A DNA stretch of 64,000 nt from Entomortierella parvispora E1425. Lineage: Eukaryota > Fungi > Mortierellomycota. The stretch is from positions 2,232,001 through 2,296,000 of the forward strand of contig BQFW01000006.1 in NCBI GenBank assembly GCA_020891255.1, read 5' to 3'. Both the position numbers and the translations under genes were made by a program. A model generated the notes under the pieces. That model made no database searches. It saw only the letters and a list, made by a program, of their open reading frames with translations, and was not told where the DNA came from. Shown here piece by piece: positions 14,506-44,736 of this stretch. The number at the start of each line of letters is the position of its first letter. Position 1 is the stretch's first letter.

Positions 14506-14809
14506 GGAGCGAGGTGAAGAGAGGAGGCGGAGGAGACGGAGGAGACGGCGGAGGATGAGTGGGTGTGGAGATCGGATCGAAACAGATCGCAGATCAGATC
14601 AGATCAGACATTTTTTGAGAGAAGTTATTCTATTCGATGTTTTCTACCTCAAATAAAATTAAACTATGTGAGCTTTTTAAGTCCAATATTTCATTTACAG
14701 AAGTTGACAAGATAATTCATAATTTATTCCCATGTTGTTTTCAGTTGAGCTGATAAACACAATGGTAAACACAAATATATATAAAAAAAGATGGTCTCCG
14801 CAACAGGAC

Positions 14810-16380
14810 TTAGACAGAATCCACGCGCTTGGTGTAGTGGTTGTAGAACATGAGGAAGAAGAGAATCAAGCTGCCAGCAATGTACATGGCGGCGTTGTAT
14901 CCGATCATGGCCTTGTAGTTGTTAGATGCCTCAAAGATCTTGCCGGCAATGGGCAAAGTGAACAAGTTACCGGGGGTGTTGGTCAAGAAGATGACCGTCA
15001 AGCCCGATCCCAAGTGCGTCAAGCCCACAATGTTGGCCGTGATGGAGGCCACCAGTGTAAAGAACGATCCAGAGAAGAATCCATACATGATAGAGAAGCC
15101 AATCAAAGCACCATGGGACTCGGCAAACATCCAGATGAAGCAAGACAGGCCCGCTAACATGAACGCGACCGAGGCAATGCGGATAGCACCCAAACGATCA
15201 CCCAAGATACCAATCACCACACGACCAATTGCGTTGGCAGCGGACATGATGGACAGGAGCTGCCCACCTTGGACCGTAGCATTCAAACCGAGGACGTCTT
15301 GGGCGTAAGAGGGAACATAGGTGAAAGGGACAACGTAAGCGAAACCAAAGAGAGCGGCAGCGACGAACCAGAGCATGAAGCCTGGATCCTTGAGAATAGT
15401 CAGGTTAATCACGTCCTTGCGAGCAGCCACTGGAGGGCCCGAGATCTGACGAGGGGCACGCATCACCAAGGCGGCAAAAGCAGTGCAGATAAAGTGAAAG
15501 ATGGCATAGATACGGAGAGTCCAGTAAATGTCGACGGCATCGAGGAGAGCAGGGATGATGAAGCCAAGAGCAAGGCCACCGACACCGGCACCACAGAAGC
15601 AGATACCCATGGCCAATCCACGGTGCTTGTCATACCAGAGAGGGGGGATAGCGGTCGCAGCCAAGTTAAGAAGCGAGGCACCAATTCCGAACATGATACC
15701 CTGGGTCAAGAACAGATGCCACAGCTCGGAAGCCCAAGAGGCAAGAAGAAGTCCAAGCGAGCCAATGATGCATCCAGACCACAGAATGACCTTGTGGCCA
15801 TATCGATTCATGACAGGACCGGCAATGAGGGTAAAGCCAAACTGGAAGCCCACAGCCAAGGAACCGATGAAGGAGATGCTGGACTGGGACTCGCCCTTGG
15901 CACCATAGATATCTTGGTAGACAGACTGGAAGATACCATAGATTGAGACGTAACCAATGGCGGCCATGATGATCTGTTGCATGTTGTAGGAAGGCAACGT
16001 GTTAATATACTTGAAGACAACACGATGCATTGATGAGAAACAAGGGCCGAGAGACAGAAGGAATTATCACGTACCAAAAAACCACCCAAAACGACAATGT
16101 AGCCACGGTAGCCAGACTCCATGACAACGTCTTCGCCAAAAGTCGCGTTGATCGAGGCGGGACGGCTGCTAGGATGGCCATGCTGTTCAGCGGCATGCTC
16201 GTAGCGCTCGTTCTTGGCAAGAACAACACCATTTCCTTGGGTGGCAGACTCGTATGAGGAGCGGCGACTGGAGATGGGGCGCTTCTGGTGATGAGCAGTC
16301 TTTTCAGGGACGGTACTGACACTGCTGTTGCTCGAGCTGTCTCCATTCTTCTTGGAGCCGAAAAGGCTGAGCTTGGTCAT
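14810..16380 (-). CDS. MFS monocarboxylate transporter (MCT/Mch family)
   Basis: GYRGYIVVLGGFL|..., LFLTQGIMFGIG, WYDKHRGLAMG and NAIGRVVIG, with about 12 TM segments. One intron at about 16000-16070. Confidence 0.9.
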
Positions 16381-19300
16381 TGAAGGGAAGGGGAAGGGCT
16401 GGAGGGTATGGAAGGGAGAGGATTATAGAATATAGTACAGGTGCTCTAGTAGTCTACAAAAGAAATGGGGGGATATCTGTTATGTACAAGAGAGGGTGGA
16501 ATGGTATATATTTTTTTTGGAGTTGACACCAAAAAAAGAATATAAAAAAGGTGCGTGGGATGTGGGAGCGGTTAGGTCCTTGTGGACAAGTCGATGCAGG
16601 GCAGCGGTGGTGAGAGTGGTGGGAAAGCGTGTGCGACAATCAAATATCAACAAGCAGCTGTTTGAGGCTCTTCTTGCTGGTTATGGTTGAAGATGTTGTT
16701 GTTGTGTGTTGTTGACGAAGGCGGTTTATTTGTTAGGGCGCGCGAAAGGAGCAAGGGACAAGAACAGTGCGTTGCTTTTGTTGACAGATCTTTGAGGCGA
16801 CGAGAAGAAAAATCAGAAAGCTGCGAGAGAGAAAGAAAGAAGAGAAGAAAGAGAGGCGGAGGAGAGAGCTGAAGGAAGGGAGGAGGGGTTGAGTCGAGAG
16901 AAGAGAGGAAGGCCCGAGGAGGCGACCTTTTTATAAGCGAAGGGACGGGCGATTTACAAAAGTGGATCGACCTTCCTTTTCTTCCTCGAGGCTTCCAACG
17001 GAAAAAAGGGAGGACATAGAAGCATCCCGGCGGGGGGATCGAGAGCCGGCAGCGCACAGGGGCAGCGACGAAAAGCGAGGCCAGCAGGACAGATAGATCA
17101 AAGGAAACTAAAGCGGAGGCCAGGCCGGGCCAGTCTGGGGCAAGAAAGTTTACTTTCAACTCTACTGACCATTCGCGCCCCGAGCCTCTCATTGATCTTT
17201 TTGACGGCAGTCCACGAATGAATGAAATGAATCACATCAAGCTCGCATCGTCGCCTGGCTTCCGACTGGTGTAAGCCTAAAGAAAGTGCAACAACAATGA
17301 TCGAGTCTGCAAGGGTCAGAGGGATAAAGGAGAAATAGGAGAAATTGTATGATGGTGCATGTCGGAGCTGAGTTGGAGAGGGGGCCACGGATTTTTTTTT
17401 TAAAAAAAAAACTGGCCTCTGTTTTCTATCTGGGCGTTCATGATGGCTTTCCGGCTTGACTTTGCCTCCCCAAAAAACATTCTACTGGACTCCCGTTATT
17501 CATTCCGGCCGGACACCAACCACTAGGGTAGCCGTGGCAGAAAAAGTCAACGAGAGACGCACGAGCAAGGGCACGATTGGACTGCAGTGAACCGTGTGGC
17601 CACCCGGTTTGGCGATATTTAAATCCATGACTTTCAATTGAACGATCATGACAGCATCGGTGAGCACCAAGTGAATAGAACAATGGTGCCATGCACCCCT
17701 CTACAGTACACAGACGTTCTTCAGACAAAGAGACTCGTCCACTTCTGAAAGGACAGAATAGGGTTCCTACATTGTCCATTGTGCAACCAACCGCCTCGAC
17801 TGAGACGCGTCCCATTGGCTCAGAGCAAAAATTGATCCTGGGGTCAACTGCTGCTCGGAGCAAGCGGCCAGTCAAAAATCGAGGAGGCTTTGAACCCTGA
17901 CCCCGCAAAATGTGGATTGCACGTTATGGAACAGGGGTCCATTCATGAATGTTCCCCACATTGCAGTCTTTTAGCAAGATTATCGGGCGGATGAAAACCA
18001 ACTCGGGGGGTTTTTCACATTCTTATAAGTTCCACCCGTCTCTGACGAGCCAAATCTTTGCTGACTGCTACTGGTACCGCGCTATGATCCAAACCACAGA
18101 GTCATGAGTATGGCCCACGTAACTCGGGTATATACCATAATATAGAACCGAGGCAGAACGATGAGAGGATATGAGAGGTCAAGTGGAAATGTCAATTAAG
18201 GACTTGGAATGAAAGTTACGGCGAGATGCTGTATTCTGTACCAACGGAACGATGAAGACTAGAACTGGGATTGAAAGGTGGGGTAAAGAGAGAGAGAGGA
18301 AAAAAAAAGAAACCAATCCATCTCGCCGCCTGAGAATTGCGGGGTAAGATTCTGGGTGGGGTAATTGAGCAAAGTTGCTCCGTGCAAGTTTAGTGGATGA
18401 GATGGATCAAGGTAGAGCGTGACATCAGGGTGACTGAAGAGACAAAGCGCTCTTTCGTCTTACCCTAATCCTCTCCTTCACCCACTTTTCTCTTTTCTAA
18501 AATGACGGCAGCGGTTGCAATCTATGGTATGGGATGGTTCTAATCTTACGATCTCCAGGTTTTTCTTTCCTTTCTTTGCTACAGAGTTCATTCTCAGATT
18601 TTTACTCTTGTCACCCTCGTGGTGATGACTTCTATCTTCCGTCAGGCGAGTGCGGGGGTGGGGAATATTTCCTGCGTTTAAGCATTGCTGATAAAGATAG
18701 TGGGTTCATTGCCTCATTTACCCCGGAAGACACTTTCCTTTCATAGAAAAACCCCCTGCTATTTGCTTCCTCTTCTTTCCTTCTAAACAAGTTCAGCACC
18801 CGATCTCATCCATACTTCTCGGATAAATGGCATGTCATTGCCAATGGTCTCGGAACAGATATGGGTGTGCATTACATAGACGGCCTAGATGGCCTCTTCC
18901 ATAATGCAAGGTGACAGAGCAGCTGGTCCAGAGCAGAAGGGGGCAAGGGTGTTTTAGCCGCTCGTGTAATCTTTGACCGTCTTGTTGTGAAGCAGAGACC
19001 GAATGGAGTCCCATTTTTTTTTTTTTTTTTTTTTTTTCGTCTCGAAGAGCACGGGCGAACTTATTCGCATTGCCTTTCCGTCATGGATCATCTAGATATA
19101 CTGCAGTCGCGTCAAAGAGGTTCTCTCAAAAGCTCTGGCCTGTTCAGCTTGTCGCATGTGCAGATTTTTGAAGAGGCTTGATCTTATATCGATTAAAATA
19201 GAATGTAAATGAAAGAACGCATCGGCAAACAAGTTAAAGAAAAGATAAGCGCGCGATCATCACAAACAGTGGAGTGGAAAGAGCAGTGTGAGAGGATCTT

Positions 19301-20475
19301 GTGATCTGGAGAAGGTGGGGGCTTACTTGGCAAGGACCAGGAGGGTCGTGATGATCCGCCCGCCATAGCTGTTGATATTCTGATGGGTTATTGTCGTCAA
19401 TGGTTGCAGCATTAGACCGAGTAGTGGGCCCAAAGGCTGGTTTCTGATGCGGTGGCATGAGGACTAGCATCTATCCACCGGTTTTCTGAGGGGTTGTTTC
19501 CATAGAGGAACGTAGTGGCCGAGGGGTCGATTTCGAGATGTCCAATGGTCGGGCACGTGATCACCAGCAAGTTCAAAAAAAAAAAAAAGGGAAAAAAAAG
19601 AGTAGGATCAAATAAGCAAACAAACAAGGGGCGACGTCAGTGGACACCAGACTAGTGCCTGCATGCAGTCGGTGAAGATTGGATGCAGACAGCAACACCA
19701 TACACCCCCAGAAGGGTGGCAGGGATAGGGAGGAGAGACTGCAATCCGAGAGACATTAAAAGGAAAGAAAAGTCCATCGATCGGTTTCGCACCGAGAAAC
19801 GTAAACGGCCAAACAGACATGCAGACAGGCAGAACAGACACAGCACAGGCACCAATTGGTCGCCTGTGCCTGGGTTATTCACTGACCGTTGTTTGTCTGT
19901 GCAACGCCACTCCATTCTTGCCTGAGAGAATTAATTTCATTTCATTTTCAGGTCCAAACGCCATTTAGGCTTTTATCTTCCTTCCATCCGACCGTCGTCC
20001 TCTGGCGTGCATAGAGTGTAGCGTGCTATTTCCTGCCTGCGCTCATCACTGTAATCATCATCTCGACATTCTTCATCCCTTCTGCCATCCCCATTCTTCC
20101 TCCCCTTGCATTTCTCTCTTCATCTCTTTCTCAGCGTTCTACATTCGTTGAATCCGAGTTGTGCCTTGTCAGTCAGTCCTCTATTTCCTCTCTTTCATCT
20201 CCCCCCTAGTCTGCACAGTCACCAATTCATCCCTTTCTTTCCCCTGTGAACTCATTGTCCCGCCTTTTGCATTCCATTCGCCCACGAATGGTCCGTCTCG
20301 AGCCATCCTGACGCAGCAAAGACGCGACTACCGCTAAACAGACACCCCTACATACTGGGGCCATCCTCCCCCTCTCTCGACTTCAGATTGTTCGGGAACA
20401 GAAACCTTGCCAGAAACAAGGCCAAGGGTCTTCACATACAAGACATCAAAAAGAACAAAAAAGGCGACTCAAACA

Positions 20476-23400
20476 ATGTTTCGTCCAGCAGCGTCTTCCG
20501 CTGCCTCATCCCTTCTCCTTCTCTCCGCCCTTCTCCCCACCCTTCTCCTCCTCGTCTCAGCTGCTCCTTCCACAGGAACATCGACTCCCAGGCGAGGCCA
20601 CAGTGCGACCTATATCCAGGACACAGTCTACTTTGTCGGCGGTCTCGCCACTGCAACCGGCACAGATGGCACGCCTGTCAAGACCTTCACCGCTCTGAAC
20701 TTGACCCAACTCACCTTTACAGAGATGCAGACGTCTCTGGCAGTTTATAACCACAGTGCCAGCTCGAACCGCACTTTGACTTGGGACCCTACGACAGGAG
20801 TCATGACCGATAACAGCACTAGTCAAATCGCCATCAGTTTCGGTCAGTCTTCAGCAAGCAACCCCGGAGTGCCCCTCCAATGGCTGGACCCCGCGACGGG
20901 AGAGGTGACAGTGGCAGGGAGCACCATGACATCCTCACCATCCTCACCGTCGTCAGGAAGTGGCAATTCTTCAGGAGGTAGTGTGTCACCAGAGAGCAGG
21001 ATAGCTCAGAGCCTGGTCCAGTTTGATAATACACTGTTGGTGCTCGGAGGTCGCGGTCTGGGCGCAGGAGCCACGCCAACAGCCGTGAACGATACCATGA
21101 CCTACGATCTCACCTCCAAGTCCTGGACCAATCGCACAACGGGACTTGCACGGTCTGGCCATGCCTCGGCCCGTGTAGGCCTGGATTATGTCCTGACCTG
21201 CTATGGAAGCAGCACAGCGGGGACAACTCTGGACTCGGACTGCGTATACTTTACGGCATCCACCTCTGTCTTTGTACCTGCAGAAATCACATGGGCCAAC
21301 AATAGCGACGCTATAGTTGGTGGCAGGACCGGATTCACGATGGTGGCCAACCCGTCAGACAATGGCCTGGCGTATTTATTTGGAGGTTGCAACTTGGCAG
21401 GGACGACTTATTTTCAGGACGTATATCTTCTGGACGCATCGAAGCCACCATCGTTGCTGATCACCAAACTTCCAACACCCGCCCCTTCAGCCATCTTACC
21501 GAGTGCCAGGGCACAGCATGCGGCCGTCGCTGTTGGAACCACCGCCTCTGGATTCATGGTCGTTTATGGTGGCGTAATCCAGCAGCAAGTGAATGCCACA
21601 GCAAACGCAACCGCTGCCCTACCGACGATGGCGATGGCGTTAGCGACGCCATTTTTCTTTGATATGACCCAAAATATCTGGGTGGACAATGGGACATTCA
21701 TGAATTCGTATGCTGTCGCCATGGCAGATATGGCGGCAGCTGCAGCAGCTACAAAGAAGCATGTGGGAGTCGCTACCATCATTGCGGGCATCCTGGCAGG
21801 TGTTGCGGTCCTTGGAGGAATGGTGGCGCTCTACATCTGGAGCGGATTGAAGCAAGATGAGCGGGAGCGTCTTCAAAAAGAGGCCAGGGGCAGTGTCTAT
21901 GTGGGCGAAAATTCATCGCCGGAACAAAGCCCTATGGATAAGAGGAATGTATACCCTTTATCACCCTCAGGCGAAGAGATGGCAACGGGACCGTTCAAGA
22001 GCACAACTTCATTGATTCAACCTGACAAGGAAGAGGCAAAGAGATTGAAAGCGCGTGGTTCAGGAGGTCTACCACTGCCCTGGATCAAATCTTCAGATCC
22101 CTATACCCCAAGTGGAACGACCTTGAACGACAACGGAAGCTATTTCTCTTCTTCAGCAGCCTCGTCCATGACGCCGTCACGGCTTACCAAGAATAACAGC
22201 AATGGATCATCACAGTATAGTCGACAGGGCTCCGCAGCCGGATCCGGGTCTGCAGTTGCACCGCCGGCGGCTGGGTATTACAACAATCAGGACTTATTCC
22301 TAGACGATCCTGAGGATGACGATTGTTCTGTGGTGGTCTCCTTGGCATCGGAATCATCAACACTTTCGCCCTGGGCGGGACCTGTGCGGCTATCGAACGA
22401 TCTTGCACCTCCCAACCCCCGGTTCAGCCGAGGAGCTATTTCACAAGCGCATCGTCAACTAGTCGGAAATTCGTTTGCCGGTCAGAGGAACAGCCAAGGG
22501 GCATACTCGAATAGCAATAGTGGATGGGATACCAGTTCCCCAGGGGGCTCGCTGTCGAGCCGCGAGGATGAGTATCACAGACGGTCCGTTAATTCGATGC
22601 AGTGGGTCGGGTTTGAACCTCTGGATTTAACAACACGGCCAGAATCAGGGTAAGAAAGAGACAGAAGCTTGAGTCGGTCAACTGTCGCCTTGGGAAAGGA
22701 AACTAACATGGCCGTCATGTTTTTCTTCTTCCTGCTTATAGAATCTTTGATCCTCTCACTCAACAACAGCGCTCTAACCTCACGGTCAGAAACGCATCCC
22801 TGTATGGCCCTAACGCGGCACGCGGCAGTCTTATGGGATCGGGCTCTGGCTCTAATCAGCCGCGAATGTCTATGTTTGGAGACAGCAACGCCAGTGATAG
22901 CAATGCGGAGGATTCACCCAGTTCCAGTTCTCAACACCGCCATCGGCCCTATTCTGGACAAGGCACTGGAACGCATCGAATCTCGACCGCCTTAGCCGCT
23001 CGCCAGCAACGGCGATCCGTTCGTGTCAGTCAAGATAGTCAATCCTCTTTATCTGCAGGAGGAGGCAGCCAAAGAACAGAAGCAGGAGAGCCAGCCTTTG
23101 TGACCTCAGTCTTGCCAGTTATCACTCACAAGGTCACCAAACCTACTCTGGCCAAGGTTGTCACTCACCAACGGGGATCGAGGGTCGTTGTCCCGAGTGC
23201 TGGCCCACTCGGCGATCGGCCGAGGGCCAATGAAGCCGGACTCGAGAATGGGGGCTCCACCACAGGGGATGGACTCGGAATCGACTTTTCAAGTTTCTCA
23301 AATGACTCTTATTCCTTCCAGCCTCCACCTCCACCATCCTCTAATCGGGGCCGGAGACCCTCCTCGACCTTGAACCCAAGCTACAACAAAGCAACAGCAG

Positions 23401-23651
23401 CGACGACCAAGCGGGAGAGCAGTCGACTGTCCATTGTCCAGAATTCGCCTCCGAATGTGATCCTCAAGATGCCCCCACCACCTAAACATACCAATCGAAA
23501 CAATCTTGCCGTCGCGAACAATACCGGTAATTCCGACAGCAATGGTGGCGCTGCTGGAGGACAAGCAGGGGCGTCAACGGGACTTCGTCATAGTATCATG
23601 GAGCTGGGTCAAGACATGCCAGGATTTCTCAACTATGGCGACAACTTGTAA
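20476..23651 (+). CDS. Type I membrane protein with kelch-like ectodomain and long Ser-rich cytoplasmic tail
   Basis: Signal peptide MFRPAASSAASSLLLLSALLPTLLLLVSA. Kelch-like units (VYFVGG, LLVLGG, RSGHAS, AYLFGG, RAQHAA, MVVYGG) and TM VGVATIIAGILAGVAVLGGMVALYIW. Intron 22650-22741. Confidence 0.8.
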
Positions 23652-23873: not shown

Positions 23874-26221
23874 TTAATTGCGGGGCTGGGAAGCGTGCTC
23901 AGGATGGGAGATGAACTCCTCGAGTCCGCCAGAAGCAGCCGCCATGGGGAAGACGTGCTCTTTCTTGCACACCTTGGCCTCCATCACGACGGGGCCGTCG
24001 TGGGCCAAGAACTCGGCCATGACGCCAGGAAGATCCTGCATTGAAGTCGCACGCAGTCCCTTGATGTTCATAGCTTCGGCCAACTTGACAAAGTCAGGGT
24101 TGAACATTTGAGTGCCGGAATAACGCTCCTCGTAAAAGAGATCCTGCCACTGCTTGACCATTCCCTGGAAGTCGTTGTTCAAGATGAGAACCTTGACTCC
24201 AATGTTGTACTGAGCGGCGGTGGCAAGCTCCATGCCGGTCATGCAGAAACTGGCATCACCGTCAATGTCAACCACAATGTGATCAGGCTTGGCCACCTTG
24301 GCACCAATGGCAGCTGGAAGGCCGAATCCCATTGTGCCCAAACCGCCCGAGGTGACCATGGAGCGAGGATGGCGCCAACGGAAGTATTGAGCAGCCCACA
24401 TCTGATGCTGACCAACACCAGTGGTGATAATGACCTTCTCCTTCATGTTCTCTGTCTGCTTGTTGAGCTCCTGAATCACAGTCTGGGGCTTGAGGGGGCC
24501 GTTGGGGTCCTGGACGTGGTAGAATGGGAAGCTAGTCTTCCACTGGTCCAACTTTGAGAACCAGTCTTTGCGCTCAGCCGTCTCGATGAAGGGCAAGAGC
24601 TTGGTCAAGTTCTCTGTCACATCACCCTCGATGGCCTCAGTAGCCTGGACAACCTTGTTGATGTTCTTAGGAGAGATCTCAAAATGGATGATACCTCCCC
24701 GCTTCTCCTGAGCGGCCTTGCGGGCTTCCGGTGCGAATCGAGGAACATTGGCAGTGACACGATCGTCGAAACGAGCGCCCAAGGCAATGATCACATCAGC
24801 ACTCTGCATCGCCAAGTTGGCATATCCAGAACCGTGCATGCCGACCATGTGGAGCGAGCGAGGATCCAATTCGTCAAAAGCTCCGAGTCCCTGAAGAGTG
24901 GTCGTGACAGGAATGTTGCCGTTGTGCGAGAGCTCTTTGAGACGAGCAGGTCCATCAGGGTGTGCCAAGATACCCTGGCCTGCATAGATCAAGGGTCGCT
25001 TGGCGGCATTGATCAACTGAGCGGCGCGCAAGAGCTGAGGGGAGGTCACTTTGGCAGGATCCTGAGCGAGGCCGGCAAAGAAGGGAGCCTGGCTTGCTGG
25101 AGGACGAGATGGAATGGCGGGACTGGTGGGAATGGGGCGAGTCAGGACTGCGGCCGTGATATCCTTAGGAAGATCAACCAAGACAGGTCCTGGCCGGCCA
25201 GAGGTCGCAATCTCAAAGGCCTCGTTGATGCGCTTGGGCAGATCGGCAATGTCCTTGACCATAACGTTCCACTTTGTGCAGGCGCGGGAGATGCCCAAGA
25301 CATCAGCTTCTTGGAAAGCATCAGAACCGATGGCGGTGACGGGAACCTGGCCAGAGAAGACGATCATGGGGGTGCCGTCGGACATGGCGTCCTGCATGGC
25401 GGTAATGACATTGGTGGCTCCAGGACCTGTTTGATATCAAAAGAAGGTTGCTGTCAGTGATAAGGCAGGAGACACACACATTTTAGGCTCTTTCTCGCTC
25501 GAACAAAGCAAAGATCTTGCTCCTACCAGAGGTGACCAATACGACGCCGGGCTTGCCCCTGTCATGTGCAACAAGAAAAAAAAAAAAAATCCGAAGATTA
25601 GGACCCAGCCAGTGATCACAGAGTCATTTCAGTCATTTTATGATTCGGACGCGGATCGGAGATAGCGAACGAAAAGTGGCTCATGCACCCTCTCCCGTCC
25701 TTGTGCTTGTTCGCTCTCTATATCTCTTTTTGCTCAAAGTGGGCAACTTACGTGACTCGCGCATACGCTTCTGCGGCATGGCCTGCTCCTTGCTCAGCTC
25801 TGGGGAGGATGAACTCAAAGTGCTTCGAGTTGTAGATCGCATCGAACACGGGCAAGATGGCTCCGCCAGGGTATCCAAAGACATGTTTCACGTCATGGCG
25901 CAGCATCATCTCGTGAAAGATCTGGCCTCCAGACATGCCCATAAAGGAATGGTCATGGCCCGGTTTGGTTGCAGCAGCGGTTGTGGAGGGGACGAGAGGC
26001 TCGGGGGCGGCGACTTTGCCTGGTGCAGAACTCACAGTCGTACTGGACCGTTTCGTAGCAGTAGCGGCTGCAGAAGAAGACTGGGTTCTGTACTGCACGT
26101 TGTGGCGCTGATGCAGAGTAGAAGACCGCACAGTCGATGCTCTTGTTGATGAGGCGGATGCTGTGGCTGCAGAGACGAGCCTCGATCTGGCCAGTCGGGT
26201 GATATGTTGTGTTGCTTGCAT
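23874..26221 (-). CDS. ILV2: Acetolactate synthase (AHAS) catalytic subunit, mitochondrial
   Basis: Arg/Ser-rich presequence, FGYPGGAILPVFD, GKPGVVLVTSGPGA, GRPGPVLVDLPKD, GARFDDRVT, TGVGQHQMWAAQ and the ThDP motif DIDGDASF...LILNN. Two introns between about 25430 and 25750. Confidence 0.97.
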
Positions 26222-26494
26222 GGTTGGAATTAAGAGTGGGGAGGAGAGGAGAGAGTTGGTATAATAATAATAATAAGTTTCTCAAGTGTCCGGAGGAGGG
26301 AGGTTGGCAAGAGCAAGCCCGGACGCAAAGTCGTTCGAGGTAGAGGTAGACGAAGAGGTAGGTGGGGTGAAGGAGAGATGGAGAGGAGCGGAGGGAGCGA
26401 GCCTTTTAAACAAAAGACGAGAGAGGCGACTCCATCCTGATCGCCAGTGGTCGCCCATCACCGCGCTGTGAGTGGTGCTCTTGCTCAGAGCGAG

Positions 26495-26542
26495 ATTACT
26501 CACAGGCCATGGCCGTCACACTCCAGCACACAAATTACTCAC
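26495..26542. promoter_or_regulatory. Duplicated ATTACTCAC (bZIP AP-1/Gcn4-like) element in the ILV2/ILV5 divergent promoter
   Basis: Exact 9-mers at 26495-26503 and 26534-26542 in the 494-bp intergenic region. Confidence 0.4.
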
Positions 26543-26715
26543 TGGCGCAAAATCTTGTTTCTGGGCCTGCGACGCATGGATCCCTTTTAACTCGCTCGAT
26601 TCGCTGTCTTTCCACCCTTCTTCTTTCTTTCCATCTTCACTCCTCTCCTCTCCTTCTCTTCTGCTATCTCACCCCTTCTCCCCCCTCTTCCCCTGTATAT
26701 ACTCTTACCTCTATA

Positions 26716-28027
26716 ATGAGCTTCGCTGCCCGTTCTGCTTTCCGCCAGTTGACCCGTGTCGCTGCTGCTGCCCCCAAGACCCGCTCCTTCTCGGTCCTTG
26801 CCCGTGCCGCCACCACTGCCCAGCTTCCTCGCGCTGCTGCCTGCAAGGTAACTTGGACTTTTTCTCTTTGGATCTCGTTCGATCTCTTATCATTCTGGAT
26901 GCTTGGATGACCTTATTGACTCAAGTTGTGTTTCTTTCTATTCTCTGTTGTGTCTACAGGTTGCCTTCAACCAGACTCGCGGCGTCAGGACCATGGACTT
27001 TGGTGGCACCAAGGAGGTTGTCTACGAGCGTTCGGATTACCCTCCCGCCAAGCTCCAGGAGACTTTCAAGGATGATACCCTGACCGTTCTCGGTTACGGC
27101 CCCATGGGCCGTGGTCAGGCCCTCAACTTGCGCGATAACAAGCTCAATGTCATCATTGGATCCCGCAAGGGTGCCTCCTGGGACAAGGCCGTCTCGGAGG
27201 GTTGGGTTCCCGGCAAGAACCTCTTTGAGATCAACGAGGCTTGCGAGCGTGGTACCGTCATCATGAACTTGCTCTCCGATGCTGCCCAGTCCAAGCTCTG
27301 GAACGAGATCAAGCCCTACCTTACCAAGGGCAAGACCCTCTACTTCTCCCACGGTTTCTCGGTCATCTATTCCGAGGATACCGGTGTTGTCCCTCCCAAG
27401 GATATCGATGTGATCCTTGTTGCCCCCAAGGGATCCGGAACCACTGTCCGTAACCTTTTCCTTGAGGGCCGCGGTATCAACGGATCCGTTGCCGTTTACC
27501 AAGATGTCTCTGGAAAGGCCAAGGAGCGTGCCGTCGCCCTCGGCGTCGGTGTTGGTACTGGATACTTGTACGAGACCACCTTCAAGCGGGAGGTCTACTC
27601 TGATCTCTATGGTGAGCGTGGAGTGTTGATGGGCGCTATCCAGGGTCTGTTCGTTGCTCAGTACGAGGTTCTCCGTGCCCACGGTCATACCCCCTCGGAA
27701 GCCTTCAACGAGACTGTGGAGGAGGCTACCCAGTCCTTGTACCCCTTGATCGGAGCCAATGGCATGGACTGGATGTACGCCAACTGCTCGACAACCGCAC
27801 AGCGTGGTGCCTTGGACTGGTGGAAGCGTTTCCATGACGTCTCCAAGCCCGTCTTTGAGGAGTTGTACGAGTCTGTTGCCAACGGCACAGAGACGAGACG
27901 CTCGTTGGCCAAGAACTCTACCCCCAACTACCGCGCCGAGTTGGAGGCCGAGTTGGCCGAGATTGCCAACCACGAGATGTGGGTCACTGGCAAGTCTGTC
28001 CGCAAGCTTAGACCTGAGAACCAGTAA
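26716..28027 (+). CDS. ILV5: Ketol-acid reductoisomerase, mitochondrial
   Basis: Presequence MSFAARSAFRQLTRVAAA, intron 26848-26960, then NLLSDAAQ, LYFSHGF, VAPKGSG, SDLYGERGVLMG, EAFNETVEE and NCSTTAQRGALDW. Confidence 0.97.
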
Positions 28028-28467
28028 AGATAGGGGGGGGGTTCTGTGATCCAGTTCATAAATCGCATTGCTTTTCACTTGTAATATCAATAAAAAAAAC
28101 CAATCATGTAGCAACAGTACTTCTCTGGTTTCCTTTGAGATCTTATCATCCAACGAATCGATAGCGTCCGTGTGGAGAGAGGACTGCCATCGATCACAAA
28201 AAGAGCCCTGCACATGCCAGCGCAGGTCAAGATCGCCACCAACCTAGTGCTCTGCCAAAGACAGAGGTTAGTCATGGATAGGGAGATGAGCAGGCTATCA
28301 CAGGAGGTGCCATCATCCCTCGTCATCGCTGCCCCCGAAGCCCTCCACCTCGCTTCTCTTTCTTTTTCTATTCCCCAGTCAACTCTTGCTTCCTCCTCGA
28401 TCTCCTCATTCTTGTACTCCTTCTTGCCACTCATCTACATCATTCGGAGCGAAGCGTCTCTTTGACA

Positions 28468-29664
28468 ATGTCGTTCTTCAGGGCCATTGTCAACCAGCCC
28501 GCCCTTGCGCTGACCAAGGCCGCAGCAGTAAATCCTGGATAGTGGTCGACTGAGATCTGTTTATTTGACAAGTCTCTCACTATTCTTTTTTGTTGTTCTC
28601 GTACTAGGTAACGGCAGTGGCGGCATCTGTCCGATCTCCAAGACTTGTCCTTCCAACAATCATCCGTCATTCGTCGTCTGCCAGCGCCGCCTCTGATTCA
28701 TCTGGTGCTGATCATGGGTACGACCAAACAGAGGTGTCTCGGCAAACAAAGAGGCGCCACGTCCATCCCCTTCGATCCCGCGACTCTCTCGATCCAACCC
28801 GACCCTCGGCTGCAGAAGCCGTTTCCCACATCCTGTACAACACACCTGGTGATCAGCAGGAAAGACGCCAGCGTCATGTCCTCAATTGTTTGGTCCAGAA
28901 TGAACCCGGGGTGTTGAGTCGCGTGGCGGGAATCTTGGCCGGACGCGGGTTCAATATCGACTCGTTGGTCGTGGCCAAGACTGAGGTCACGGATCTGAGT
29001 CGGATGACGATCGTTCTAAGAGGCGAGGATGAGACGGTGGAGCAAGCTAGACGGCAGTTGGAGGACCTGGTAAGATTGACAAGATGAGAGAGAGAAAAGA
29101 GGCAATCTTTGGATCATTGATCGTTCTTTTTTTTTTTTTTTTACTAATGGCGAGTTTCGATCCTTCCTTCATTCATTCTTCTAGATCCCTGTGTGGGCCG
29201 TATTGGATTACACGGGATTCAAACTCATCCAACGCGAACTGTTGCTCGTCAAGGTGTCCATCCTCGGGCCCGAACATGTCCACATGCAGAGATTTATCTC
29301 TGCCTCGGTTCCACTCCCACAACATCAACAGCAGCACCTCCAGCAAGAGCCAGCAATGTCACCTTCCAAGGCCTTGATCCAAACACAAGACCACCTCGGT
29401 TCCTTGACAGAGCTGAGTAAGCTCTTCCAAGGCCGTGTCGTCGATGTCAGCAGCGACTCTGTGGTCCTGGAGATGAGCGCAAAGCCTGATCGGATTGATG
29501 CATTTATCAAACTGGTCAAGCCCTTTGGGATTCTGGAGGCTGCTAGAAGCGGTATGATGGCCATGCCTCGTTCGCTCATCCACGATCTCTATGAAGGTCT
29601 CGAGCAGGATCAGGCCCAAGAGGAAGGATCGGGTGTCGATGCTGCCTTGTTGCCACCTGGTTAA
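28468..29664 (+). CDS. ILV6: Acetolactate synthase regulatory (ACT) subunit, mitochondrial
   Basis: Presequence MSFFRAIVNQPALALTKAAA (intron 28528-28607), ACT domain LNCLVQNEPGVLSRVAGILAGRGFNIDSLVV, RELLLVKV, FGILEAARSG and C-terminal LPPG. Confidence 0.96.
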
Positions 29665-29910: not shown

Positions 29911-31310
29911 CTAAAAGTCAATGTCATCCTTGAGCATGCCGCCGCCAAGCTGCACCTTCTCGCCAGGCTGGAATGCAGGCATGCCAGTGTATGGACATGA
30001 TCCACAACGGAAGGCATCTCCGAGATAGCAGTTTCCACATGAAGACTTTGGCTGCAAGGCCTTTGGCACAACCTCAGTGATGGCCGACTCCTTCCACCGG
30101 TTGGCGTTTGAGGCGACAATAGCCTCTTGAGGGACAGGTCCTGCAGAGGAATCAGTCATATCCACATCTCCTTGCTCATCCTCGGGCTCGCCCTCAGACT
30201 CCATGCCGCAGGTGCAGTTCTTGCACTTCTTCTTCTTCAGGCTGTTGGGCCCGCACTCAGGTGCCTCCAATTGCTCCTTTGTGGGTTTGACCAAATCCGA
30301 TTCATCCAGCAAGTCATCCTCATCCTCGAGTTCCTCATCATCGTCATCGTTGGCAGAGATGGTCCAGACAGCAGCCTTGTTGACCTTGGGGGCGACGACA
30401 GCAGGGGCAGCGGGAGTCGAGGCAGCAGCAGCAGCACGCTTCTTTGCCCAAGGCAATGCGGCAGCAGCGCCTAGTTCATAAGCAGGTTTCTTGGCCGAGA
30501 TCTAGAAAGGAAGAAAGAGTCCGAGCAATTAGTAAGTGATTGCACCACCAAAAAAAAAAAAAAAAAAAAAAATAGATGCCTATCATCTCGGACAAGAAAA
30601 TATGAGCACGCCAGCCCATTTGAGATTGAAAGGACGGTCAATCTTACCTCGACAAACTCGATCTGGTCCTTGAGCGCAGCAACATCGGTCTGGACACCCC
30701 AGGCCTGGATCAATCCTGCAATCTCTTGCTCGGAAGCCCTACGTTGGTTTACCACCGTGACCTCAACAAATCCCGAAATCTTGAGGGCCGAAACAAGATC
30801 GGCGCTCGAGCGTCCCAAAGTCTGGGCAATTCCGGAAGAGACAACCTGGGGATGGGCGGAAGCGGAGGCTGCGAGCACGGGCTCAGTCAAGGCCAATCCA
30901 CCACCGGGCAACAGAGTTCCAGCCAGGGCAGTAAGAACTGTGGTCGAGTGCTGATGGGCAGAAGGAGCAACTGCGCCAGTGACGATGGCATTGTAGGTAG
31001 ACTTTGGCAAGGGGACTAGAGGGAAGGAACAGACATAAGCGAGGATTTTTTAAAAAAGAGTTTTTTTTTTTTTTTTTTTTCCAGGAGTCAGCTTCAAGAC
31101 AGAGGGGAGAATGTAGAAACAACAGGAACATTGGTCCTTACTGGAGGCAAGACGGTCAAACTGCTCAAAGTTGACAGAACCCTGGCTACCAACGGAGGCA
31201 AGAATTGAGTCGCGAGCCTGGGTCAGGTCTGTGGCCGAGGCCGAGGCTGTGCCAACGAGAAGGACCTTGTGTCCTTGGCTGACAAGGGATGAGGTAGCAA
31301 CAGGGGACAT
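29911..31310 (-). CDS. DRE2: Fe-S cluster assembly protein Dre2/anamorsin
   Basis: C-terminal Cys motifs [17 protein letters not shown] and [31 protein letters not shown]; N-terminal methyltransferase-like domain; two introns. Confidence 0.95.
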
Positions 31311-32718: not shown

Positions 32719-35303
32719 TTATGGGGCCCAGGTCTCGCGATGGAAATCGACCGCCCAGTTGGCCAGCTTTGTCTGCTTCTCGATCATGTCCACAAATCCA
32801 TCGGGTCCACCTCCAAAGACGGAAACCAGACCATGGTCCTTATCTTTGGATCCGACACCGGCGTCGACAAACGTCTGAATGGCCTTCTTAACATCGAGGC
32901 GACCCCTGGAGTAGACAACATCGCCTTCATCCCAGTTGCCATCCTCAATCGCAAGGCGCTCGTCTTCCGTGGCCAGATCAGGGTAAGGCAAACCACCCTT
33001 CTCCAAATCACGGCCGCGACGCATCAGGATCTTTCTTGCCAACCAAACAGCAAAGTAACCAGCAATAGACGAAATAATGATCTGGATAGTACCAGGGATC
33101 AAGCCATAAGTCCAGCGACATTGAGCCTGGATAATAGTACCACGCTTCTTGGTTGTAGGGCACCAGTTGGAGGGGCCTTCCCAAGGGACCGAGCGAGCCA
33201 CACACCAAGCGGCGAGAGGGATAAAAATCAGGATACAAGTCATCAACAGGTCAAGCTTGGCCCATTTGGTTGCGACAGAGACGGATCCGGAGGCTTGGAA
33301 AGTAGGCAGAGGCTGGTCGTTATAGGTCATGGCACGAGTAGGATGGGCAGACGACTTGGGCTCGACGCCTTCCTTCGCAAGCTCGCAGCCTTCCTCAACA
33401 ATATCGTCCAAACCGACGACGGTGTGAACAGACTCAGAGCGGTGGATGGAGGATTCTTTGCTGTTGGTCTGGGTCTCTTCAGCAGACGCATCGACTTGAG
33501 GATCCCTGGGGTGGACAGGCGACTTTTCGACATCAGAGGCAACAATGGTACGACCAGAAAGAGCGCGCTTGAGCATGGTGCCGGTGCGCTTGAAGGAGGC
33601 AAAGCGCTTCTTCTTGTCCTTCTTCTTGAGTTGACCGGGAACCATGATATCATTCTTGACAACGTGGGCGTGGGCACCCATCAACGTCTGAGGCTTGTCA
33701 GGGCGGGAGACATAGATCTCGACGTGCAACCAGCTGGTGAATCGAGGATCACGGGTGATCTGGTGCAAGAAGGAACCATAGGCGTGCAACTCACTGCGAG
33801 TGCGGAACGTGCAGATCAAATGCAATTGCATGCGAAGAGGCTCAGGCGAGGCGGCGATCTGGGCGGCAATGGCCTTGATCAAGGACATGAAGGTGGTAAT
33901 GGCAGCACCGGCGACAAAGATGATCACCGTCTCGGACTTGAGGTAGTCGTGGCGACGATCACCAAAGACACCATCGACATTGGCGCGCACACGGATGCGC
34001 TTATCTTCGTTACCACACAATCTAGCAAGGTTGCAAGTCCAGCTCAGCTTGGAATCCTCGAACGTACGGATGTAGAGAACCATCGAATAGGGATCCTCGG
34101 GCCAGTAAGAAGCAATTGTGAATGGATGGTAGACGGTTCCAATCTTGGGGATCTGGACTGAGATGTAATCGCCAGGATAGTAGGGCTTCATGGGCTCGGG
34201 CGATGTGAAGGTCATTCGGATAATATCCGCATCCGAGTTGAAGGTGCAGGTAGCCTCGGGCAAGATTGTGCGGGCTTGCATCATCTTGGGAACGAACCGA
34301 TCGACCAAGAAGAGAATGATACTGGGGAGGAGGTAATACCAGATCAAGACGCTTGGGTAATGGGTGATCATACCCACAAAGAACACTGCAGTCAAGAAGC
34401 GATGGGAGCTCAAAAACAAAAGGTAGCAGCGACGACGGATTTGAGGGATGGCACCCAGACCAAGGAGAACGACAGCACCGTAGGCAAAGACACCCATCAT
34501 GTTCAAAGTACCACGGCTGAGGTCATAGAAGTTGATGTCGGACGCGAGGCGACCTTCATTGCCCAAGAAAATGACATAGCCGATGGTGTGGACGGTACTC
34601 CAAAAGACGATGGCAACTCCCAGCCATCTATGCAAAGGCAAGATTTCAGAGTAGGTGAAACCAATGGCATGGAGCATGGACCGACGAAGGACGAGGAAAA
34701 GAATCATTGCACAGCAGGCAACGACGGAGTAGCCACTGGCGTTGCCAGCCATACCTGATGACCATGAAATAAAAACATTAATACAAGTTTTTTTTTTTTT
34801 TTTTTTTTTTTTGATCGAGACGGCGTGAGTAATGGGAACTTACGGGCAATGCCACCGAGGTTTCCAAAGCGCTGAATCATTCTTGGGGTGCCCAAGACCA
34901 TGGGGACCGTGAACCAGGCAATGTTCATGAGGACAGTGATGGCAACCATGATCCAGTACTTGACCGTGTATCCCCACCAGATATGTCTTTCCCAGAGGGA
35001 GATCTTTTGGGTAACGGAAGCAGGAGTGGTGACCTTGGCGATACTGTGCTGGAACTCGCGCTCAGCTCTAAAATAGTGGCCCCAGATGGTTGCGATATGT
35101 CCCAAGATCGAAGGCGCCATGCAGGCACCGAGCATGTAGTAATCACGCTCGCCATAGAAGTAAGCACTGGTGATCTTGGCTTGCCAGGTCAATTGGTAGT
35201 CGCCAAATAGATAGGCAATCGGAATCAGGGTGCAGATGATAATGAAGAGGTAGAAGGGTCTCATCATCCTAGGATATCTGATGGACTTGAGGGAGAAGGC
35301 CAT
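32719..35303 (-). CDS. Ferric/cupric reductase (FRD superfamily, FRO/FRE type), paralogue 1
   Basis: Four heme His (LHRWLG, TVHTIG, SSHRF, THYP), FAD motif YHPFTIAS, VDGVFG, IIFVAGAAITTF, and terminal GGPDG...DFHRETW. Intron 34755-34843. Confidence 0.9.
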
Positions 35304-41985: not shown

Positions 41986-44736
41986 ATGGTTTCCGTCATC
42001 GGTGTTCTTCAAACCGTGGTGATCAGCATGTGCCTCGCCTGCTATGTGGGCTGGCAGTTTGCAGACTACTTTATGCTCTGGCAAGCCAACATCAAGTCTC
42101 ATTTCGTCTTTGGTCAAATTGACCTTTACTGGTCCGTTGTCTGTCTCCTACCGATCCTCTTGGGGCACTTTGTTACGATTTGGGGTAACTACTTCCGAGC
42201 CACTGCACAATTCGAACACTCGATTGCCAAGGTCACAACCCCGGCAAACAAGCACCAACAGATCTCGTTTTGGGAACGTCATGACGGTTGGTTTGGTTTT
42301 ACGGTTAAGTTTTGGTGCCTTGCCGGTTTGATTACAGTCATGAACCTTTACTGGTTTATTCTGACCACGGTCTTGAGTCGAGATGGCTATGTCGCCAGTC
42401 TGAACAACTCGACTCAGGCGACGGTTCGAGCCATTGCTTACGGAAGTTCGCAGGCGGTGTTGCTGGACCTGTCTATTATCTTGTTCTTGGTCTTGCGCCG
42501 GTCGATGCTGCACGCACTTGGGTTCACGTACCCAGAGCTGATTCCTCTGCATCGCTGGCTGGGTGTAACCATGCTGGGATGGGCTACGATCCATGGAGCG
42601 TTCTACTCGGCGTGGCTGACCATGACAGGCCAGTTCACGAGCAACATTGCGTTCACTGACAAGACACGCGGCACCCGCGACATGCCTGGTGTTTTCGCTT
42701 GGGTAAGTGAGCGGATCTGATAATTTCCCTGCCCCTGTCTCGAATGTCTGTCCATCTGCCCACCCCCTTGGCCGATTTGGGTGTCCGCCCCTGTGCGGTT
42801 GACTGTCGGTTTCCTTATCTGATCAAAACATTTTTTTTTTTTTCTCGTATGTTTGTTTATCCGCCTTCGTGGTCTCTGACTCTGTCCCTGCGTTCTCGTC
42901 GTCCAGTTCGGAATGGTCATCATGGCCTTCTTTGCCCTGCCCCAGTTCCGCCGCGCGGTCTATCCCATCTTCCTCTACATCCATCGCGCTGGTACCTTTG
43001 TGTTCATGATTGGCCTCATGATGCACTACCCCTCGGTCATGTTGTGGTACTACGCTCTTCCCGGGTTTGTCCTCTTCCTCCTCGATCGCTTCGTCCCAAA
43101 GATCATGCAGGCCAGATCCATCAGCCCGATCGCAACTTGCTCCCTCAACACCGATGCGGACATCATCCGGGTCAAGTTCTCCTCCCATGAACCCATGAAG
43201 CCCTACTACCCTGGTGATTACATCACTGTCCAGGTTCCCGGCCTCGGCAACATCTACCATCCATTCACGATCGCCTCTTACTGGCCCGAGGATCCTTACT
43301 CGATGACGCTGTACATGAGAGTGTTTGGTGACTCCAAGTTCAGTTGGACGAAGGATCTGGCCAAGCTTTGTGGAAACGACGACAAGCGAATCAGTATCCG
43401 CGCCAATGTCGATGGTGTCTTTGGTGATCGTCGTCACGACTACCTCAAGTCTGAAACGATGATCATCTTTGTCGCCGGTGCTGCCATTACCACCTTCATG
43501 GCCTTGATCAAGGCCATTGCTGCCCAGATTGCCGCCTCGCCTGAGCCTCTCCGCATGCAATTGCATTTGATCTGCACGTTCCGTACTCGCAGTGAGTTGC
43601 ACGCCTATGGCTCTTTCCTGCACCAGATTACTCGCGATCCTCGCTTCACCACCTGGCTGCACGTCGAGATCTATGTCTCCCGCCCTGACAAGCCTCAGAC
43701 GTTGATGGGTGCCCACGCCCACGTTGTCAAGAACGATATCATGGTTCCTGGTCAGACCAAGAAGAAGGACAAGAAGAAGCGCTTTGCCTCCTTCAAGCGC
43801 ACAGGCACCATGCTCAAGCGCGCTCTTTCTGGTCGCACCATCGTCGAAATCCCTCCACCATCGCTTGCTGCCAACGCCTCAGCAATTGAAGCAGAGGCAA
43901 GATCCACGGATGTGAGCAATATCTCCTTGGAGCGTTCAAGCTCTGTCAAGTCGGCTGTCGATACTTTGAACAACCAGGAGCGACTCGATGAGTCTGGTAT
44001 CACTGTTGATTCCTCGTCCTCTGATCAGGCCAGAGGATCGAACGATAACGAATTGTCTTCGATCCCTGAAAAACCAAAGATGAACATGACATACAATGAG
44101 AACCCTCTGCCAACGTTCCAGGCTGCAGGTACGGCCACCGTCTCCAAGAACTTGGCCAAATTCGACCTTTTGACCAGCGCGGTCTTGGTCGCGGTCCCAA
44201 TGGCAATCTACTACGCCATCCGCACAGTGAAGTGGGAGGGCAGCCCTCACTACTGTCCCACTACCAAGTCCAAGAGCAGTTTCACGATCTTTGTTTGCCA
44301 ATGGACGTACGCTCTCCTCCCTGGATTCTTCCATCTCTTTGCGTTCTTGTTGCTTGGATACGGTGGTATCTATATGGCCCGCAAGGCTCATCGCAGATCG
44401 CAAACCGGTGGCTCTGATGTGGAGACGGCTGTGCCGTATCCAGATTTTGCGGCCGAGGATGAAAAGATCTCTGTTGAGGATGGAAACTGGGATGAGGGTG
44501 ATGTTGTCTACAGCCGTGGAAGGATGGATGTCCGCAAGGTGATCCAGTCTTTTGTGGACCTTGGCATCGGTAGCAAGGTCTCCCATAAGTCTGATCAAGG
44601 ACCTGGAGCCAAGCAGCACCGCGGTCTGGTCTCAGTCTTTGCTGGTGGTCCCGAGGGCTATGTGGATATGATTGAGCGCCAGTGCAAAAAAGCGGCTTGG
44701 TCAGTTGAGTTCCATCGCGAGACCTGGGCCCCTTAG
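41986..44736 (+). CDS. Ferric/cupric reductase (FRO/FRE type), paralogue 2
   Basis: LHRWLG, TIHGAF, YIHRAG, MHYP, YHPFTIAS, VAGAAITTF and GGPEG...EFHRETW. Intron 42703-42906. Confidence 0.9.
42715..42823. promoter_or_regulatory. Two intronic ATCWGATAA sites in reductase paralogue 2
   Basis: ATCTGATAA at 42715-42723 and TTATCTGAT at 42815-42823, inside the 204-nt intron. Confidence 0.6.

Follow-up and report, generated by a model that had tools for sequence, protein, structure and literature searches.

A contiguous ILV2-ILV5-ILV6 cluster in Entomortierella parvispora as a candidate divergent duplicate of an early fungal gene neighbourhood

Metabolic gene clusters of eukaryotes are usually young, lineage-restricted and engaged in catabolic or secondary metabolism. 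The yeast clusters GAL1-GAL10-GAL7 and DAL are catabolic and young, they arose within lineages of Dikarya, and their co-regulation was shown. In Escherichia coli, the isozyme pairs ilvBN, ilvGM and ilvIH of acetohydroxyacid synthase (AHAS) are encoded by adjacent catalytic and regulatory genes, and the duplicated sets diverge together. In Saccharomyces cerevisiae, ILV2, ILV5 and ILV6 are found on different chromosomes. Here, we analyse a stretch of 64,000 nucleotides from the fungus Entomortierella parvispora E1425 (GCA_020891255.1, contig BQFW01000006.1, positions 2,232,001 to 2,296,000; hereafter the window, with coordinates counted from its first letter), in which these three genes for making branched-chain amino acids (BCAAs) are immediate neighbours.

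The closest described systems are from Mortierella alpina, for which the clusters “ilvB-ilvF1-ilvE1” and “ilvF2-ilvE2-leuB1” were noted in one sentence, without orientation, synteny or phylogeny (Sonnabend et al. 2022, J Fungi 8:196, PMC8880518). The first-pass annotation of the window had considered such a cluster to be unreported, and this claim falls with the M. alpina clusters named in that article; apart from it, no mention of ILV linkage was found in the full-text literature, subscription journals being outside the coverage. Within the literature surveyed, two points appear to be new, namely that the linkage extends far beyond Mortierellaceae and is older than the family, and that the window copy is a divergent duplicate; neither point had been raised at first pass. 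Taking all its parts jointly, we consider it rather probable that the cluster is native, that it is a duplicate situated at the ancestral locus, that the gene neighbourhood stems from an early fungal ancestor and that selection has kept the genes adjacent.

The three genes of the window are as follows.

23874..26221, minus strand: ILV2, AHAS catalytic subunit; exons 26221..25752, 25558..25527 and 25426..23874; 684 aa.
26716..28027, plus strand: ILV5, ketol-acid reductoisomerase (KARI); exons 26716..26847 and 26960..28027; 399 aa.
28468..29664, plus strand: ILV6, AHAS regulatory subunit; exons 28468..28527, 28608..29069 and 29185..29664; 333 aa.

Gene models were read from the DNA by hand, then spliced and checked by script. 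All five introns have GT..AG ends and the frames of all three genes are open. The ILV2 model is identical to GenBank GJJ72384.1 (E. parvispora) across 684 of 684 aa, and this full-length identity confirms its splicing. The spliced models bear out what had been proposed from the sequence alone, that ILV2 (-), ILV5 (+) and ILV6 (+) are intron-bearing immediate neighbours, and show all three to be intact; the gaps given at that time, 494 bp between the start codons of ILV2 and ILV5 and 440 bp from the ILV5 stop to the ILV6 start, were reproduced exactly. The window locus is therefore a eukaryotic primary-metabolism gene cluster in the sense of at least three adjacent, non-homologous genes of one pathway. 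For three named genes among some 10^4 in a genome, contiguity by chance would have a probability of the order of 10^-7.

Identities of the products rest on domain and family models. The ILV2 translation carries the Pfam domains TPP_enzyme_N/M/C, of which the N domain is encoded in exon 1, as well as the GDx...NN motif of thiamine pyrophosphate binding, and the last exon alone scored 601.9 bits with TIGR00118 (NCBIfam; cutoff 538.35), which identifies a predicted biosynthetic AHAS catalytic subunit (ILV2/IlvB). The ILV5 product contains KARI_N and KARI_C domains and scored 338.5 bits with TIGR00465 (cutoff 226.15). Its closest solved structure is the mitochondrial KARI 7toc with 540 bits, as compared with about 200 bits for plant and bacterial KARIs, and it is 94% identical to the KARI of Linnemannia schmuckeri; it is thus predicted to be a short (class I) fungal mitochondrial KARI. 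The ILV6 product, with ACT_AHAS_ss and ALS_ss_C domains and two TIGR00119 matches of 105.8 and 91.4 bits (cutoff 56.9), is of eukaryotic length, has the fungal regulatory subunits 6wo1_B and 6u9d_C as closest solved structures, and is assigned as a putative AHAS regulatory subunit (ILV6/IlvN). The first 45 residues of each protein have five to eight Arg/Lys and no Asp/Glu and are rich in Ser/Thr/Ala, a composition compatible with a putative mitochondrial presequence.

To place this arrangement among fungi, 10 kb on either side of KARI genes from other species were surveyed and checked by tblastn, and further cases were taken from consecutive GenBank accessions on shared contigs. INT4x locus tags are not positional and were not used as evidence of distance: in Umbelopsis isabellina, ILV2 and KARI are adjacent (L006), with tags 37 apart. 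ILV2(-) is head-to-head with ILV5(+) in U. isabellina and in Allomyces macrogynus (Blastocladiomycota), and ILV6(-) is head-to-head with ILV5(+) in Calcarisporiella. In Linderina pennispora (Kickxellomycotina), ILV2(-), ILV6(+), ILV6(-) and ILV5(+) fall within 7.6 kb. The window's own order recurs in Thamnocephalis sphaerospora (Zoopagomycotina), where RKP08818, RKP08819 and RKP08820 are ILV2, KARI and ILV6. Accession order is ILV2, ILV6, KARI in Dispira simplex, ILV6, KARI, one unread accession and then ILV2 in Dispira parvispora, and KARI, ILV6, ILV6 in Coemansia javaensis. ILV2 adjoins KARI in Fennellomyces, Zychaea, Circinella umbellata and Umbelopsis nana. On a metagenomic contig (Ga0164294_10015671, L016:1-6229) of a source that is intron-poor and branches with fungi on a long branch, strands alternate along ILV2(-), ILV5(+), ILV3/DHAD(-), ILV6(+) and an ankyrin gene; with these four ILV genes, the three enzymes of the shared pathway are all encoded, the regulatory subunit of AHAS included.

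Each lineage has different genes around the ILV pair, and still the pair itself is retained. Judged from gene order, adjacency would thus appear to have been kept beyond shared ancestry of a chromosome block in Mortierellomycotina, Mucoromycotina, Zoopagomycotina, Kickxellomycotina and Blastocladiomycota, with unrelated flanks in each. Some further arrangements were recorded in the same survey. Kickxellomycotina hold two ILV6 genes inside the cluster (the Linderina pair at L008:7087-9064), and the adjacent copies of Coemansia are about 45% identical, which makes regulatory-subunit duplication both old and recurrent in this group. In Basidiobolus meristosporus (L003:8107-11203), two KARI genes stand head-to-head about 700 bp apart.

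The adjacency also recurs closer to the window, in Mortierellaceae. Taken over all lineages, it is seen in many independent assemblies, and restriction to a single assembly, named at first pass as a finding that would refute the proposal, does not apply. Contigs of a related strain span ILV2 with ILV5 and ILV5 with ILV6 in the same arrangement; contigs from four runs of relatives are taken as DNA because intron-sized inserts are retained in them. In M. alpina, Dissophora and M. polycephala, ILV2 is placed beside KARI by consecutive accessions on shared contigs. Two assemblies of Actinomortierella wolfii show a Kelch gene, ILV2(-), ILV5(+), ILV6(-) and an open reading frame (ORF) of 1027 aa of the LeuB-dehydratase type. 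In L. schmuckeri (L004), ILV2(-) and ILV5(+) are followed, 3.4 kb downstream of ILV5, by an ECH_1/ECH_2 gene (HIBCH-like, valine catabolism) at 14795-17023, and no ILV6 was found up to the contig end.

It should be added that the A. wolfii ORF adjoining ILV6 (L001:15016-18099, plus strand) is continuous over its 1027 aa and fuses a LeuB-type isopropylmalate dehydrogenase (419 bits with TIGR00169, above cutoff) with an aconitase-family dehydratase. The dehydratase part comprises large and small subunits; its best matches are prokaryote-type models of isopropylmalate isomerase and homoaconitase, below their cutoffs, and it is not of the fungal LEU1 type.

The window cluster is bordered on both sides by genes of other functions.

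20407..23651, plus strand: Kelch-repeat gene, left flank, with Pfam Kelch families.
29911..30456, minus strand: Dre2/anamorsin (CIAPIN1) gene, right flank, Pfam PF05093; non-BCAA, end of the cluster.

By tblastx, the Kelch gene of the window is collinear with that to the left of the single A. wolfii cluster (20587-23510 against 2158-5532 of L001); this flank similarity was not found in the L. schmuckeri locus. The window copy would hence occupy the ancestral position, retaining the Kelch flank of the single Actinomortierella cluster. In the Mortierellaceae tree, the window ILV2 forms a clade with Gryganskiella KAG0054450 and a metagenome protein (support 100, long stem), separate from the main clade of the family with other Entomortierella, Linnemannia and Mortierella. 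Identities to the single-copy genes of A. wolfii are given below.

ILV6: window copy 67%, orthodox copies 79-83%.
ILV2: window copy 77%, orthodox copies 79-85%.
KARI: window copy 86.5%, orthodox copies 87-89%.

These relative rates against the A. wolfii genes indicate that both AHAS subunits have diverged and KARI has not. In the trees, the end branch of the window ILV6 is 1.09 as compared with a median of 0.087, which marks a fast-evolving copy, and that of the window KARI is short (0.05). Together, these values point to a divergent duplicate with both AHAS subunits diverged and KARI conserved, a pattern compatible with a second set of AHAS isozyme subunits.

The genes themselves look native. 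For all three proteins the best structure matches are fungal enzymes, which scored roughly double what plant or bacterial enzymes did. In quick-search trees with support from the Shimodaira-Hasegawa-like approximate likelihood ratio test (SH-aLRT) only, built for KARI (47 rows) and ILV2 (46 rows), fungi are a single clade; Mortierellaceae and Glomeromycotina were recovered in both, and the KARI tree also recovered Mucoromycotina and Kickxellomycotina. The two trees thus follow fungal taxonomy, which answers in favour of vertical descent the question of vertical or bacterial origin posed at first pass. In these trees the lineages with a cluster are placed in the taxonomic groups to which they belong rather than with each other, which argues against transfer of the cluster between fungi. 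The window does not look like a bacterial-type operon: rather than being co-directional, as genes on a single mRNA would be, ILV2 is on the strand opposite to ILV5 and ILV6, five spliceosomal introns are present and the spacers are 440-494 bp. Recent bacterial ancestry, the other mark of such an operon, is not seen either, fungi being one clade in the KARI and ILV2 trees. The earlier proposal of native fungal genes rather than a recently transferred operon therefore stood, upheld by structure matches, trees, introns and the divergent ILV2/ILV5 pair. This supports a cluster of native, vertically inherited fungal genes of primary metabolism.

The three nuclear genes would be transcribed separately and their products imported into mitochondria, where Ilv2 and Ilv6 would form AHAS and Ilv5 perform the next step, these being the first two steps that valine, leucine and isoleucine synthesis have in common. 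The head-to-head pair of ILV2 and ILV5, often joined by ILV6, would have been inherited from an early fungal ancestor and lost in Dikarya and several other lineages, and its adjacency was probably kept by selection. Such selection could have acted by coordinating transcription, with a divergent promoter or a chromatin domain in common, or by keeping matched catalytic and regulatory subunits of AHAS together in inheritance; once duplicated, each cluster would then supply an AHAS isozyme set of its own. The two spacers of the window are as follows.

26222..26715, no strand: ILV2-ILV5 divergent spacer, 494 bp; candidate shared bidirectional promoter, with two copies of ATTACTCAC.
28028..28467, no strand: ILV5-ILV6 spacer, 440 bp; candidate own promoter region of ILV6.

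The ATTACTCAC copies (TTACTCA) lie in the middle of the divergent spacer, at 26496-26502 and 26535-26541, 39 bp apart. The motif is one base away from the Gcn4/AP-1 core, and TGAGTAA/TTACTCA occurs eight times across the whole window.

Several observations weigh against an ancestral, selected and co-regulated cluster. In Melampsora, Glomus cerebriforme, Phycomyces, Basidiobolus and Rhizophlyctis, the 10 kb to either side of KARI had no ILV2 or ILV6, and because linkage is missing at these five loci, an ancestral origin needs many losses; Dikarya and chytrids were each sampled thinly, by one locus read directly. The place and strand of ILV6 vary among lineages. A motif scan revealed neither Gcn4 (TGASTCA) nor Leu3 (CCGN4CGG) consensus in either spacer, and the regions upstream of ILV5 in the window, in L. 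schmuckeri and in A. wolfii could not be usefully aligned and yielded no conserved promoter block. According to the M. alpina literature, ilv expression responds to BCAA feeding by a factor of about 4 at the most, and ilvE1 and ilvF1 are induced by valine along with ilvA, which is unlinked; M. alpina is without a Leu3 homologue and no Leu3 sites were reported (PMC8880518), all of which speaks against a strong regulatory role. As regards the duplicate, the window ILV6 groups, on a very long branch, with the clade of “long” ILV6 paralogues of Mortierellaceae (SH-aLRT 90), and its pairwise identity is higher with short forms (69-74%) than with long ones (61-66%), so that its placement in the tree may reflect long-branch attraction.

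Among other explanations, the highest-ranked is neutral retention, in which neighbours of an early fungus have simply not been separated so far in slowly rearranging lineages and no functional benefit was involved. The patchy distribution with its many losses, the weak transcriptional regulation in M. alpina and the lack of conserved promoter elements in the spacer comparisons are all in its favour; persistence of the ILV pair across lineages of four fungal phyla while the flanks change, the recurrent head-to-head orientation and the fact that duplicated copies are both still clustered are not, and we regard it as unlikely. Somewhat less likely still is that clustering was repeatedly favoured and the genes were joined independently in Mortierellomycotina, in Zoopagomycota, in Umbelopsis with Mucorales and in Allomyces. 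Such convergence would agree with the absence of common flanking genes, with linkage missing in many lineages and with the changing place and strand of ILV6, which follows ILV5 in the window and in Thamnocephalis; in Kickxellomycotina it sits between ILV2 and ILV5, and in A. wolfii it is on the minus strand. It would have to explain why ILV2(-) and ILV5(+) are divergent alike in Mortierellaceae, Umbelopsis, Allomyces, the metagenomic contig and Linderina, when random orientation would match with a probability of only about one in four per independent origin.

An older bacterial source was weighed as well, namely that an ilvBNC-type operon was acquired by an early eukaryote or fungus and received introns and promoters later. 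The gene content is indeed that of ilvB, ilvN and ilvC, and one bacterial contig (L074) is ordered ilvB-ilvC-ilvN. Moreover, in comparisons with contigs of bacterial genomes (L093-L172) and metagenomes (L019-L092), the KARIs of Planctomycetota (Gemmataceae and others) and Bacteroidota share 63-70% identity with the mitochondrial KARI of fungi. The look-alike ilvC, however, had neither ilvB nor ilvN within 6 kb in 49 Planctomycetota loci, and the co-directional ilvB and ilvN of Bacteroidota show identities of just about 41% and 25% with the fungal proteins, which leaves the three genes without a single donor; a bacterial donor operon fitting all three was sought and none was found. Since fungal ILV2 and ILV5 are, in addition, divergent rather than co-directional, and fungal ILV2 stands on a long branch apart from bacterial sequences, we hold this origin to be improbable. 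It should also be mentioned that these planctomycetal and Bacteroidota KARIs are far closer to the fungal enzyme than most bacterial KARIs with solved structures. Least probable of all, to a degree that we give it hardly any credence, is a self-resistance function, by which the divergent ILV2/ILV6 would guard the fungus against its own AHAS inhibitor, the product of a biosynthetic gene cluster close by. The AHAS genes are duplicated and the window copy is the divergent one, and a resistance-gene-guided mining study reportedly found AHAS copies inside fungal biosynthetic gene clusters; KARI is part of the cluster and yet not divergent, and the GQVP and QWQ stretches, which we take to be sulfonylurea-resistance sites, are unchanged in the window ILV2 translation. 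No ORF of the size of a polyketide synthase, non-ribosomal peptide synthetase or terpene synthase was seen in the 64-kb window (ORFs of at least 180 aa, scanned in part), the neighbours being Kelch, Dre2, ferric reductase, major facilitator superfamily and biotin-ligase genes, and this reading was rejected because no core biosynthetic gene was seen near the cluster.

We therefore prefer the native, ancestral and selection-kept neighbourhood, as worded at the outset. A more specific version of it is put forward tentatively, as something quite possible: the pair of divergent ILV2 and ILV5, to which ILV6 is usually added and, in at least one lineage, ILV3, would be an ancestral fungal neighbourhood, kept by selection since before the split of Blastocladiomycota, Zoopagomycota and Mucoromycota and lost in Dikarya, and its duplicates would encode distinct, co-adapted AHAS isozyme sets.

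As for the surroundings, no further BCAA genes were found among the large ORFs of the window, and the LEU2 fusion adjoining the A. wolfii cluster is absent among them. To the right of the cluster, within 20 kb, there are three ferric-reductase-like genes, at 32719-34752 (-), 42913-44736 (+) and 49406-51055 (+).

If the more specific, tentative version is true, the ancestral ILV neighbourhood would rank among the most ancient eukaryotic metabolic gene clusters known. A housekeeping cluster for biosynthesis that has the content of ilvBNC, is made of native intron-bearing genes and is kept in lineages of several early-diverging fungal phyla would differ from the usual eukaryotic clusters and would be a natural test case for the preservation of gene order in eukaryotes, with a shared promoter or chromatin domain, dosage balance of consecutive enzymes and co-inheritance of interacting subunits as candidate reasons. 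AHAS and KARI are targets of antifungals and herbicides, and in Mortierella the production of lipids and peptides draws on BCAA flux; two diverged sets of AHAS subunits in these fungi would be relevant to inhibitor studies and strain engineering. The origin of fungal KARI, given its likeness to the enzymes of Planctomycetota and Bacteroidota, merits a study of its own.

In comparison with known systems, the window is nearest to the M. alpina clusters, which come from the same fungal family and have the same three genes adjacent; Leu3 sites are unreported there (PMC8880518) and none were found in the window spacers, whereas the listed order is B-F-E in M. alpina and ILV2, ILV5, ILV6 here. With bacterial ilvBNC it shares the joint encoding of the large and small AHAS subunits and KARI. 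It differs from that operon in having three monocistronic-looking, intron-bearing genes separated by spacers of 494 and 440 bp, a divergent ILV2/ILV5 pair with the order B-C-N, and fungal-type proteins with putative mitochondrial presequences. Like GAL1-GAL10-GAL7 and DAL, it unites neighbouring genes of a single pathway that are transcribed separately, two of them divergent across a common intergenic region; unlike them, it is anabolic and spans several early-diverging fungal phyla, and its co-regulation is putative. Finally, it resembles ilvBN, ilvGM and ilvIH of E. coli in that genes for the subunits of an isozyme are adjacent and duplicated sets diverge together.

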